Positions 31,264 to 40,231 of a stretch of 64,000 nt of DNA are shown piece after piece (position 1 is the first letter of the stretch; each line of letters begins with the position of its first letter). Position numbers and translations under genes: made by a program. Location: contig NC_088803.1 in the NCBI RefSeq assembly GCF_011386835.1, positions 36,394,001 through 36,458,000 of the forward strand, given 5' to 3'. This stretch comes from Chrysemys picta bellii (Eukaryota). The notes below the pieces were generated by a model, which was not told the DNA's origin, ran no database searches, and worked only from the letters and a program-made list of their open reading frames with translations.

Positions 31264-31966
31264 TCAAGTGTACATCATTTCTGCCATGTGGGACATTTTC
31301 TTGGGAATATATAAGTAATATTCCATGTATCCTGAAAGATCTTCAATTGTCACATCGTCCACGAAGGCTCGAGCTTGCTCAGAACAAGATCGGGGAGAAC
31401 CTGATGAAGCCATACCAGAGGGCGATTTGTTCTGCAGAGACTGGGAATGGACTTCTAGCACTGCCTTTTCACATTCTGACAGGACGCTCCGTAAGCCAGA
31501 AAAAGAGTACACTTCCATGTCTTGCCACTGTCTGCACTGGCATTCCTTGCCCTCGCAAGGACACTGCTTGCTATCGCTGAGCACAGATAATGACTGGAAA
31601 TCTGAAGGCTGGCTAGAATCCAGGTTGGTTTCAAAGGACGAAGAAACAGCAGCAGAATTCTCTCTTGAATTCTCCAAAGGCTGTTCAATTGTGGAAGCTC
31701 CCAAAGGTTCATTTCTGGCTCTTCTGCAATCACTGGCATCAAAGCAGGAATCATACTTGTCCCCTGTACACGGTCCTTCTGCAACACAAATGTCTGAGCT
31801 GATATTACTCTTTGAAGTGTCTGGCTGGCTTTTGTGTTTCAACTGGCTGCGGGCAGAAGATGCTTTCATACTGCAGTAGGTAAACTTGGGAGGATGCAGG
31901 ACAGGAGACTTGGAACGCCTGCGACGCTGGGTTCTTGATGACCCCCTGGAGGGCTTCCTCACACAC
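31264..31966 (-). CDS. OSER1 paralog, last coding exon (703 nt)
   Basis: cactaacag|G TGT GTG AGG AAG: same acceptor position and phase as OSER1 exon 4. Open frame [26 protein letters not shown]...[10 protein letters not shown]...[31 protein letters not shown]; 43 of the last 44 aa are identical to OSER1. Confidence 0.95.
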
Positions 31967-33009
31967 CTGTTAGTGAACAAAATATGAACAATTAGGTTAC
32001 TCAGAACTCAATTCCGGAGCCTAATGCTTTCCAAAACAGGACCTCACGTACAGCAAGACAGTGTCAAGTATCCGACCTGAATGATGATTATCTGTACAGC
32101 TACAGAAAAACCCAGCACGCCACTGGTATCTGAATACCCTCAGGAGACTAAATCACAGAAGAGAATTGACAAGAGATATTCAGAATGCACATTCACAATA
32201 GCTACAAATGCCAGTGTTTTGGTGATTAAACTCTTGTGTGTTTAAATAAAAGGGAATGGGGAGAGAGAACTGACCTTCCTTCCACCCTAGATTATGCTGG
32301 AAGCAGAAGAAAGTGGGAGAACAGGATCTAGAGAGTATTGTAAGAAGGATTGTGAGGGAGCTGATACCCCAGAGGAAGGATGCTTTCCTGCTGTAAGATT
32401 GTTTTTGTAACTGAACACACCAAGCTGAGGAGGTTTTGAAGTTGCTGTTGAGGGAAGCAGCAACAGACTCAGGAGAAAGGAACTGATGCTGGGTTTTATT
32501 TCATTTATATTGAATTACAAAATGATCATCCAGGACACGTAAGGATCTGGGTGGAAGAAAGGAGCGGAAAGGACTGAGATGACAATTGTCACAGATACTG
32601 ATACTCAGGAGGATGTAATTGATATGATGACAGAAGAGGAGTTGATATGGAATATTGTTATAAATACTGTAGGAGCAGAAATGTATTGATATGTAACCTC
32701 GTTATTGAGAGAGTATAAACTTTTACTGGGGTAGTGGAATGTTTATTGCACACCATAATGCTTGGCTTCAATAGGGGCTGTAGGAAAAACAAACAGGGAA
32801 GCAAAACAATGGCTTCCCAGATAAGAACATCTAGGTACATACTTGAACGACAATGAGCCATGGTGTTAGGATCAGGGATCCTGTCTCCTCTGTTTTCATC
32901 AAGTTGCAAACCTCCCAGATCAAAGGGCTACAAACAGTTAGGGAGTATTTTGATTCGTGGGAAGATGGAGAGGGTTGTCTCTGGTCAGCATCTGTCTAAG
33001 GAGACAAGC

Positions 33010-33435
33010 TGTCACGGACAGGCTCTGTGGAGGAGTCTGAAGGAACTGGTCCTTCCCAGATCTAAGAAGTGGTAAGCCTTAAGGGGCACAGCTAGATATA
33101 CGTACAGTCTGTCCTATATTTTTTAAGATCTGTTTTCTATGAAATGCTTTTGTGCTAAATAACTAATACTTTGCTTTAAGGAGGCTGTTTGGTCACTGCT
33201 TACCTCTGTCATTGCCCCAGAGGGAACAGAATTCCAGGGTCTGAAAATATATCAGATCTGCTGAGGTAATCAGTTAGTACCAGGGGACTGATACCTGAAG
33301 CCTGGTCTGAGAATGGAAGAATCACACAGTTCGACTCAGAGCCAGGTAGCAGCTAGATAACTGAGAGCTGAAGGATGATATTACTCAAAAACATCAGGAG
33401 TGATCAGAGGTGCAGTTAGCCCAGTAACTGTGACA
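33010..33435 (+). mobile_element. Possible solo LTR in paralog intron 3
   Basis: TGTCAC...TGTGACA termini and LTR-like content; no matching TSD found. Confidence 0.35.
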
Positions 33436-33689
33436 CATATAGATAGATACCAGTATCTCTTGAAGGGAGACAATCAAACAGGATTTGCTTCAAGGGTTTG
33501 TTAAAAGGCTATTAAAAAGAATCAAGATGAACTCTAAGTTAAGGTTTCTATAAACAAAAAAGGGGGAAATAATATGGCTCAGCTGCTTAATTAAACAAGC
33601 AATCCCTGTCTGAAATGATGTTATGCATGTTTTCATCATCTCTAATTAACAAGGCATAAATATACAGTTCAGTTAACAATGTGTTTTAC

Positions 33690-33800
33690 CCATGCCAAGT
33701 CTCTTTGGCACAGACAGGTTGAGGTTTGGTTCCATCCATAGCTGTTCTTATCGGTGCTCTCAGACTCGTTCCCTCATCCACAGACAGAGATGCGGTAGAT
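33690..33800 (-). CDS. OSER1 paralog, middle coding exon (111 nt)
   Basis: ctctcactcag|A TCT ACC...CAT GG|gtaaaa; translates [37 protein letters not shown]; 24/38 identical to OSER1 exon 3 with one codon deleted. Absent from the ORF track. Confidence 0.95.
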
Positions 33801-34460
33801 CTGAGTGAGAGGAAAAATGTTACATTAAGACAGTGCCACAACATATGTCTCAAAGTGTCTCCACATTGATGTTGCGCCCTGCTCCTCTCAGAAGGCTACA
33901 TTAATGGTAATGGGATGTAAATCCATGTTCCAATTTCTATTGTCACAGGTTCATTGCTAAACAGAGACTTATGGTTTCACTGAAAACAGGAGGACAGGAT
34001 GTCTATAGCAGGAGACCAAGGAGCCAGTGGGAAGGAAGGGAGATGTGGCAAGAGAAGTGAAGAGGCTACCTATCCATTATTCCGCTCAGACAGAAATGAA
34101 ATGCAAGGCAACTCCTCTATAGGACTCTAGGCCCTGTTTTTCAGAACTGCAAGCATACAATTCCATTACCAGAAATGCCTTGTTTGCCTAACTCTCTCAA
34201 CTGCAGTAAATGCAAATAGCCAGTCAGAAGTCTAATGAGCCATCTATACATACAAACCCTGTGATTAAACATGTGTTTCCACCCCAGAGGTAACTACATT
34301 GCAGTGGTCATTGAAATGACTCCTTTATGTCCCTTACTTACCTGAGGGGAGATTGGAGACTTAGGTAATGCCTCTAAAGCATTGAACAATGGAAGTACAA
34401 AGTGTTTTTCATTTTATTAAAACTTGACAAACTGAGCTACTTTTCTACAAGCTCACTTAC

Positions 34461-38873: not shown

Positions 38874-39124
38874 GGGCTTGTCTACACTGGCACTTTACAG
38901 CGCTGCAACTTTCTTGCTCAGGAATGTGAAAAAACACCGCCCTGAGCACTGCAAGTTTCAGCGCTGTAGAGTGCCAGTGTAGACAGTGCACCAGTACTGG
39001 GAGCGCCCCTCATGGAGATGTTCTTTTTAGAGTGCTGGGAGAGCTCTCTACCAGTACTGGTGCCGCAAGCCACGTTAAAGCGTTGCAACAGCAGCGCTTT
39101 AACGTTGCCAGTGAAGACATGCCC
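38874..39124. mobile_element. PIF/Harbinger-type MITE
   Basis: TIR GGGCTTGTCTACACTGGCA / TGCCAGTGAAGACATGCCC; TSD imperfect. Confidence 0.75.
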
Positions 39125-39891
39125 CAAGTCACACATATGAAGGGGAATAACCTGTATCGGTATAAGGTAACATTATACTGGCATAGCTGTGTCTACACTA
39201 GGGCTTGTACCCACATAATTATTTTCATGAAAAACTAGAGCCCTGGCCGAGGGTTACACTGCAAAACCCCTGTGTGTAGCTCAAGCCTCACTTGCACAGA
39301 CCCTTCGATCCTGGCCCGGTGCTGCATGAAGAGCAGCAGCTCCCCGCGCCCCTTGTTCTCTACATTTGTCTCTCCTTGCGCTGGAGAGGAATGAGCCGCA
39401 CAACCCGCAAAGGGGCCTGGCTCGGGAGGGGGCGATGCCAGAGCGCGGGTGGGCACAGAGCGCGCTGCTGCCAGGTTCACTGGGCGAACCGAAGGGCAGA
39501 GCAGCTCTCCGAGGCAGGGGGCGGCCGCCGTTTAGCGGTGTGCCTACAGCGCCGAGCACACGGGGACCAGGGCCCTGGCTTGGCCAATACAAGCAGGCCA
39601 GATGAGCTGTGGACGCTCCCTGCCGCCCGCAGCCGAGGGGGCACCGTTCCCTGACCCCTCCTCCTCACGCGTGCGATGCTTGCCCGCTGGGAGACCCTGA
39701 GCGGCAGCAGCAGAGCTCAGGCGGGCTCCCCTCACAGCCAGCGCGGCCCTATGCCCCGGACGAGACCCCGCCGGGTCACCTCCGGGCCTTCCGGGGTTGC
39801 GCGGCCCCGATCCTTCTTCCACGAGAAGGGGCATGGAGACCGGGGAGGGGGGAAGCAAGACAGGCCCTCCCCGCCCAGCTGCGTCACTCAC

Positions 39892-39950
39892 CAGAGGGCC
39901 TCCAACTCGCTCGCCGAAAGGGGATAAAAACAACAGGAACTGACGTAAGC
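39892..39950 (-). other. Putative non-coding exon 1 of the OSER1 paralog (TSS approximate)
   Basis: Strong donor CTG|GTGAGT at 39892/39891; Inr-like TCAGTT about 50 nt upstream on the minus strand; no ATG in the exon. Confidence 0.55.
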
Positions 39951-40099
39951 GCACGCGAGGAGCAGGATTGCGGAGGCGCATGCGCAGCTGCGTTCGCTGC
40001 AGAACTATCGTGCGGGGGAGGGGGCCGCACATGCGCCATTTGTGTTTCTGTGCCCAGCGTTCCCGGAGGGCGCATGCGTGCAACCAGCCAGCCACCGTC

Positions 40100-40231
40100 C
40101 CCTTCCTAGTGCTGAGGGTTTTCCCATCCGGGTTATTCGACCCGAACGGTGACTCCCGCCCCGCCCCGGAAGAAGCCGCTGGGTCTCGGGGCGGCGGCGG
40201 CGGCGGCTCCTTCCCTGTGGGGCTGAGCGCG
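40100..40231 (+). other. OSER1: Putative non-coding exon 1 of OSER1 (TSS approximate)
   Basis: Consensus donor GCG|GTAAGT at 40231/40232 in the CpG island; contains (GGC)6 at 40190-40207. Confidence 0.7.

Follow-up and report, generated by a model that had tools for sequence, protein, structure and literature searches.

Does OSER1-DT, a human lncRNA (long non-coding RNA), descend from a protein-coding gene that reptiles and birds have kept? The question is raised by a stretch of 64,000 nucleotides from the turtle Chrysemys picta bellii (contig NC_088803.1, positions 36,394,001 to 36,458,000; hereafter the window), which carries two OSER1-type genes placed head-to-head with one CpG island between them. 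On assembly GCA_011386835.2 the locus lies at ~36.42–36.44 Mb of CM062330.1, and the gene order in the window is GDAP1L1 (reverse strand), the paralog (reverse strand), the CpG island, OSER1 (forward strand) and JPH2 (forward strand). The second OSER1-type gene, annotated by NCBI as OSER1-like, is here termed L; its partner, adjacent to JPH2, is termed canonical OSER1. The initial annotation had proposed that L sits in the place of OSER1-DT and that the lncRNA may be its fossil. We conclude, at a probability of roughly 70%, that L is a working second OSER1 gene, a duplicate that predates the amniote split and was lost in mammals, and that OSER1-DT is the heir to its position and promoter and not a fossil of its sequence.

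The answer depends on the age of the duplication. A maximum-likelihood tree (LG+C20+F+G4) was built from 45 database proteins, comprising sharks, sturgeon, paddlefish, coelacanth, lungfish, eight amphibians, four mammals, eight canonical sequences from sauropsids and 19 of L; the protein database search used the last exon of L only. Tetrapods are recovered with support of 98/98, amphibians with 96/92, mammals plus canonical sauropsids with 100/98 and L with 100/100, and L falls outside the clade of mammals and canonical sauropsids. Forcing all sauropsid genes together, canonical and L alike, costs 28.8 log-likelihood units (approximately unbiased (AU) test, p-AU 0.021). Five consensus columns unite mammals and canonical sauropsids against a state shared by L and the amphibians, with the outgroups sharing the L state in four of the five, while no column unites canonical sauropsids with L and none unites mammals with L. 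The derived states common to mammals and to canonical turtles and birds are GLR to GLQ, a 2-aa insertion (PP, IP or LP), ECEK to PERR or PDRR, KFT to KFI, and a deletion of 5–6 aa before SGSPRSCSE; at these sites L, amphibians, coelacanth, lungfish, sturgeon and shark carry the alternative state. With the diagnostic segment removed, the grouping of mammals with canonical sauropsids persists (91 in the Shimodaira–Hasegawa-like approximate likelihood ratio test, SH-aLRT) and L stays outside. The tree, the AU test and the shared indels thus place the duplication before the mammal–sauropsid split. The initial annotation had made its proposal depend on a duplication predating the amniote split, which is borne out on these three counts; the opposite outcome that it named, a duplication confined to turtles or sauropsids, was looked for in the gene tree and was not found (p-AU 0.021).

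Were the duplication specific to sauropsids nonetheless, mammals would never have had L, and its place in the tree would be an artefact of asymmetric evolution. Two copies are seen in sauropsids only, the AU p value is only 0.021, and fast duplicates can be drawn rootwards. L is not the faster copy, however: its non-synonymous divergence (dN) from Xenopus is 0.291 and that of the canonical gene 0.293, and its ratio of non-synonymous to synonymous divergence (dN/dS) is lower. Long-branch attraction is therefore unlikely, and was rejected as the cause of the basal position of L on both rates and indels. A sauropsid-specific origin would also require L to have reverted exactly, at two indels and several substitutions, to the state of fish and amphibians, and it sits poorly with a clade of mammals and canonical sauropsids that survives without the diagnostic segment. 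We regard it as very improbable.

The opposite displacement, a duplication older than tetrapods, fares better. Of the two copies, amphibians would then have kept only the L-type orthologue; L would be of the parental type and mammalian OSER1 the derived duplicate. Every L-type motif is present in the amphibian proteins, amphibians compare with L at 57–61% where canonical turtle OSER1 compares at 54–55%, and the trimmed tree puts L below a group of amphibians plus (mammals plus canonical sauropsids), with support of 87. Ancestral states held in common are no evidence of orthology, however, the monophyly of all three amniote groups is not rejected (p-AU 0.33), and one extra loss is required. Xenopus tropicalis has a single OSER1 copy within 22 kb, and no JPH2 or GDAP1L1 exon was found within ±10 kb at that locus. 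A pre-tetrapod duplication seems to us rather doubtful. One further DUF776 protein, P0159 (262 aa, branch length 3.0), was excluded from the final trees; its KFTY and GLR motifs are of the ancestral type, and its N-terminus is unusual.

L has the character of a functional gene across sauropsids. Its last exon has a dN/dS of 0.17–0.24 in turtle, gharial, Anolis and snake, compared with 0.32–0.34 for the canonical copy, and by these ratios L is under purifying selection. Among the matches listed, L-type proteins that are full-length (287–296 aa) come from a side-necked turtle, tuatara, gharial, lizards and both palaeognath and neognath birds; the other entries for L from turtles are longer or shorter isoform models, and the DUF776 domain is found on all. 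The arrangement is likewise conserved. In emu, canonical OSER1 on the reverse strand is followed by L and GDAP1L1 on the forward strand; the snake Erythrolamprus has L on the reverse strand, then canonical OSER1 and JPH2 on the forward strand; in Anolis L is followed by GDAP1L1; and in gharial a homologue of canonical intron 1 lies upstream of L. The order OSER1 then JPH2 is also seen in dunnart, gopher and snake.

The two copies are named inconsistently: the L-type gene is plain 'OSER1' in Anolis and Pogona, and in Erythrolamprus the canonical-type gene adjacent to JPH2 is 'OSER1-like', although by position and tree it is the orthologue of human OSER1. This snake canonical protein (P0124) is very divergent, with an end branch of 1.31 against a median of 0.08 and an odd composition; its last exon is 48% identical to that of the turtle canonical gene, and the neighbouring snake L is well kept. 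The pattern suggests that selection on the human-type copy has been relaxed or shifted in snakes. As a contradiction of the diagnostic indels this sequence was considered and set aside, its net length being of the canonical type and its divergence too great for the sites to be scored.

What of mammals? The derived motif is carried by each of the six mammalian proteins in the 120 matches listed. No L-type protein from a mammal occurs among these matches to annotated proteins; L-type sequences come only from sauropsids, and those without a name fall closest to sequences of birds, lizards or snakes. Since the duplication is older than the amniote split and the head-to-head slot is conserved, mammals must have lost L, and the copy that disappeared is, on the sequence comparison, the one with the ancestral-type sequence. 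A possible marsupial L, Monodelphis P0158 (UniProt A0A5F8H7R0), was rejected: its GLQ...P motif is canonical-type, its C-terminus has decayed, and it clusters with dunnart OSER1. This protein of 278 aa, labelled OSER1, has a first-exon block that is partly missing and a scrambled C-terminus, and is a degenerate canonical-type copy, probably modelled from a pseudogene or retrocopy.

Mammalian DNA was examined for remnants of the lost gene in OSER1 ±10 kb from the fat-tailed dunnart and the pocket gopher Thomomys, which provides ~6 kb and ~3 kb, respectively, beyond the CpG island. Within these upstream segments no remnant of L was found by tblastn with the L exons, by sensitive blastn with the whole turtle interval or by a hidden Markov model (HMM) of L. 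The HMM, built from 14 L proteins and run against six-frame translations, matched canonical exons only in both species, as did tblastn and blastn (E values 4e-7 to 4e-87). The turtle coding exons of L lie 5.4–8.6 kb beyond its exon-1 donor, and for that reason the negative result from ~6 kb and ~3 kb is a weak one.

The human side of the comparison is taken from published papers only. OSER1-AS1, which is OSER1-DT, is transcribed from the plus strand at hg19 chr20:42839726–42854667 and has two exons (PMC8177763). Hezroni et al. 2017 screened systematically for lncRNAs at the sites of lost coding genes (PMC5577775, Genome Biol 18:162), and their Table S4 lists the lncRNA XLOC_043069 (chr20:42839570–42855166, anchors FITM2 and OSER1), paired with the lizard gene ENSACAT00000016797, which was lost in mammals (PMC5577775). 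For this pair, 'conservation beyond first exon' and 'significant sequence similarity' are both FALSE, so that it is supported by synteny only; similarity was assessed there with BLASTN, TBLASTX and SSEARCH (PMC5577775). The match between the slot and the human lncRNA has therefore been on record since 2017, with a negative outcome for sequence similarity. The lizard gene is probably L: within 10 kb downstream of the L-type copy in Anolis the sole gene call is GDAP1L1, which mammals retain, and lizard gene identifiers numerically adjacent to the OSER1 anchor occur among the lost coding genes (GLCP) of Table S1 (PMC5577775).

Measured by the features that define a GLCP-derived lncRNA, the locus gives a divided picture. 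A gene present in non-mammalian vertebrates and gone from mammals is what the matches listed contain, and the tree, the p-AU of 0.021 and the shared indels make that gene older than the mammalian lineage. Synteny is seen directly in sequence for turtle, emu, Anolis and snake and is taken from the papers for human; to this extent sequences and papers agree with the initial annotation, which had matched the paralog to OSER1-DT in position and orientation. Similarity between the lncRNA and the lost gene was not found, the published entry being FALSE and the partial dunnart and gopher interval yielding no match.

The promoter supplies the remaining link between the two lineages. A CpG island at 39000–41000 (GC 0.55–0.72; CpG observed/expected 0.6–0.76) is the predicted bidirectional promoter of L and canonical OSER1, and the opposing exon-1 donors of L (39891) and OSER1 (40232) lie 340 bp apart within it. 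An ETS/CRE (cAMP response element) composite core motif, ACAGGAAnTGAC, is found as a single copy in the turtle locus, at 39933–39945 on the forward strand; the gharial, emu, snake and pocket gopher loci likewise have one copy each, and that of dunnart has a variant. Its distance to the OSER1-side exon-1 donor is 299 nt in turtle, 290 nt in gopher and 295 nt in dunnart. Judged by this common core and donor spacing, the OSER1 promoter is homologous between sauropsids and mammals. On the other side, the block 39855–39892, which ends at the exon-1 donor of L, shows conservation between turtle and both gharial and emu (0/200 shuffles); no significant conservation of this block was found with gopher (12/200 shuffles) or dunnart (36/200). 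The core lies 39–63 nt from the L donor in sauropsids, and a consensus donor on the divergent strand lies 96 nt from it in gopher and 570 nt in dunnart; the gopher donor does not align with that of L. The promoter segment 39918–40110 contains the ETS/CRE composite (ACAGGAACTGACGTAAG), two copies of GCGCATGCG (NRF1-like), one GCGCCATTTGTG (YY1-like) and one CCGGAAG, of which the cross-species comparison covered the ETS/CRE core only. ETS/CRE, NRF1-like and YY1-like motif types are common at bidirectional promoters.

These data bear directly on the proposal that OSER1-DT is a fossil of L in the strict sense of sequence, with exons or splice sites derived from lost exons of L in the manner of Xist from Lnx3. 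In its favour are the matching slot, strand and homologous promoter, the existence of L before the mammal–sauropsid split, and the gopher consensus donor 96 nt from the core (39–63 nt in sauropsid L). Against it stand the absence of significant similarity, and of conservation beyond the first exon, in the published BLASTN, TBLASTX and SSEARCH comparisons (PMC5577775); the restriction of L-clade HMM, tblastn and blastn matches in dunnart and gopher to canonical exons; and the L-side flank, which is not significant between turtle and mammals (12/200 and 36/200 shuffles), with a donor block that is conserved in archelosaurs and does not align to the gopher donor. More than 180 million years (My) of neutral decay would, moreover, wipe out unconstrained exons. 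Descent of the lncRNA from L exons in this sense is highly unlikely, and it is unlikely that even one exon of OSER1-DT descends from an exon of L. The fossil hypothesis of the initial annotation is thus left without sequence support, since the published pair scores FALSE and the ~6 kb of dunnart and ~3 kb of gopher searched show the core promoter motif only.

By its published coordinates, OSER1-DT lies in the vacated slot of L and appears to start at a homologous promoter. Divergent transcription at CpG-island promoters is generic (Wu & Sharp 2013, cited in PMC5577775); because divergent transcripts arise at most such promoters, the match in slot argues only weakly for descent. An intermediate possibility is that OSER1-DT is the direct transcriptional heir of L, with divergent transcription and the first exon continuous since the amniote ancestor while the coding exons decayed. 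We consider this possible, though the less probable course. Our preferred account, positional and promoter inheritance, would run as follows. Duplication took place before mammals and sauropsids diverged, and the amniote ancestor would already have had the head-to-head pair. The copy kept by mammals, and as the canonical gene by sauropsids, would have gained two indels and several substitutions, while L kept the state of fish and amphibians and was, as predicted from the turtle sequence, transcribed from a compact bidirectional CpG-island promoter shared with canonical OSER1. L would then have decayed in stem mammals while the promoter kept firing both ways, and OSER1-DT would most likely be the output of its second direction, spliced from sequence not descended from the lost exons.

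Several observations weigh against this account of L as an ancient duplicate lost in mammals and succeeded by OSER1-DT in position and promoter. The AU test rejects a sauropsid-only duplication with moderate strength (p 0.021), and the four diagnostic substitutions lie together in a single segment, though the indels and the trimmed tree agree with them. A duplication before the amphibian split and one after it both fit the data, given the p-AU of 0.33 for amniote monophyly. That mammals lack L is a conclusion drawn from annotated proteins and from only 3–6 kb of divergent-side DNA in two species, and the identity of ENSACAT00000016797 with L is no more than probable. Finally, the evidence fits continuous inheritance of divergent transcription and a later independent origin at the CpG island alike.

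The exon structure of L can be read from the window. On the reverse strand, a 5′ exon in the CpG island (39892–40075; donor GT at 39891–39890, GTGAGT) has its putative transcription start site at or beyond 40075, which is also where the coding sequence of the longest NCBI model begins. The first coding exon follows at 34461–34582 (ATG at 34537–34535, donor GTAAGT). Coding exon 2, located by tblastn at 33690–33800, ends in ETWHG; its acceptor and donor could be read and its phases fit those of its neighbours. The last coding exon, including the stop codon, occupies 31264–31966 (open reading frame (ORF) 31264–31980, acceptor AG at 31968–31967) and encodes ~233 aa with the conserved DUF776 C-terminus. 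All splice sites are canonical and the phases consistent, giving a protein of 296 aa in three coding exons, the same length as the Pelusios and Sphenodon orthologues. The initial annotation had placed the paralog at 31264–40231; this interval holds except at its upper boundary, 40231 being the end of exon 1 of canonical OSER1 on the forward strand and hence outside L on the reverse strand. The last exon is 100% identical to the NCBI OSER1-like protein of C. picta bellii, and the Pfam family of OSER1, DUF776 (PF05604), is matched by the NCBI model, by all L orthologues and by the genes of the locus. Between L and the canonical copy in the window, the last exons share 55% amino acid identity, the coding-exon junctions of L match the canonical positions, the two have an N-terminal block in common, and they are nearly identical over the last 45 aa.

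Isoform X9 of the NCBI models (P0001) includes an alternative upstream exon, placed at 36534–36695 on the reverse strand by tblastn of the model, which adds an N-terminal extension. It is missing from the orthologues of 293–296 aa (e.g. P0007–P0010) and probably represents a minor or spurious isoform. Beyond the stop codon, a pattern scan identified candidate polyadenylation signals for L at 31016–31118 on the reverse strand (AATAAA at 31113, ATTAAA at 31060 and AATAAA at 31021), 151–243 nt past the stop, and DNA similarity between turtle and gharial continues to ~30894. Within intron 1 of L, the segment 35500–37500 is GC-rich (GC 0.60–0.65) and low in CpG, and contains long overlapping ORFs rich in P, G and L on both strands. 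Resembling segments lie near 37050–37500, and Tandem Repeats Finder (TRF) reported only a small 31-bp repeat there, at 36752–36811; the GC-rich stretch is probably a degenerate repeat or transposon.

Canonical OSER1, on the forward strand, begins with a non-coding exon 1 at 40076–40231 (start putative; donor GTAAGT at 40232). Its first coding exon is at 43760–43875 (ATG at 43799), its second at 49124–49237 (tblastn, ends approximate) and its last at 50876–51568 (ORF and tblastn, 5′ end approximate). A run of 132 N bases at 47106–47237 falls within the first coding intron. JPH2 exon 1, with MORN repeats, follows on the same strand at 57891–58260, 6.3 kb 3′ of the OSER1 stop codon. On the other flank, GDAP1L1 is the next gene downstream of L and shares its strand; its exon 1 lies at 23880–24067 (ATG at 24067), 7.2 kb from the stop codon of L. 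Exons 1–3 of GDAP1L1 are identifiable on the reverse strand at ~24067–23880, ~16073 and ~12503 (region 12400–24067), and the remainder lies towards the left end of the window.

Similar histories are known at other loci. The pairs of Hezroni et al., such as LOC768855 and the DPH5-divergent lncRNA LOC102606465, combine a lost coding gene beside a neighbour's promoter with a mammalian lncRNA divergent from the same promoter, as does the OSER1 locus. The DPH5 pair has significant sequence similarity, whereas the OSER1 pair has synteny only, and at OSER1 the lost gene is a paralog of the gene across the promoter. Xist with Lnx3 and JPX with USPL are likewise lncRNAs located where an ancestral coding gene, still present in sauropsids, once lay; for Xist and JPX, however, residual homology to an exon or upstream open reading frame (uORF) can be demonstrated, and for OSER1-DT none is known or was found. 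OSER1-DT also resembles the generic '-DT' transcripts of CpG islands, which are head-to-head with their partner, start within a few hundred bp of it and are poorly conserved past the first exon. At most -DT loci the divergent direction had no ancestral coding gene, in contrast to the OSER1 locus, where one would have been present in the amniote ancestor.

OSER1 (C20orf111; DUF776, PF05604) is a FOXO-regulated oxidative-stress gene, and its published phylogeny includes no sauropsid and does not mention the paralog (PMC11336091). Searches of the literature brought up nothing relevant on a paralog of OSER1 or a gene termed OSER1-like. L shares with OSER1/C20orf111 the domain, the three coding exons and the near-identical C-terminal 45 aa, but differs in forming a separate lineage of amniote age that mammals do not have. 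Already known were the annotation of L as OSER1-like and the published slot match with the human lncRNA; what is added here, from protein comparison, is a date for the duplication before the mammal–sauropsid split and its polarity, mammals having kept the derived copy and lost the one that resembles the gene of fish and amphibians.

For annotation, the consequence is that squamate L-type genes carry the name 'OSER1' while the true orthologue of human OSER1 in the snake is called '-like'. The locus is also a clean test case for what remains at a bidirectional promoter after one partner gene dies. Should OSER1-DT be the direct heir of L, human OSER1 would belong to an ancient pair as its derived member, the ancestral-type one living on in reptiles and birds only. 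For the biology of OSER1 the implication is modest: reptiles and birds hold a second, more conservative copy, and mammalian models are without it.

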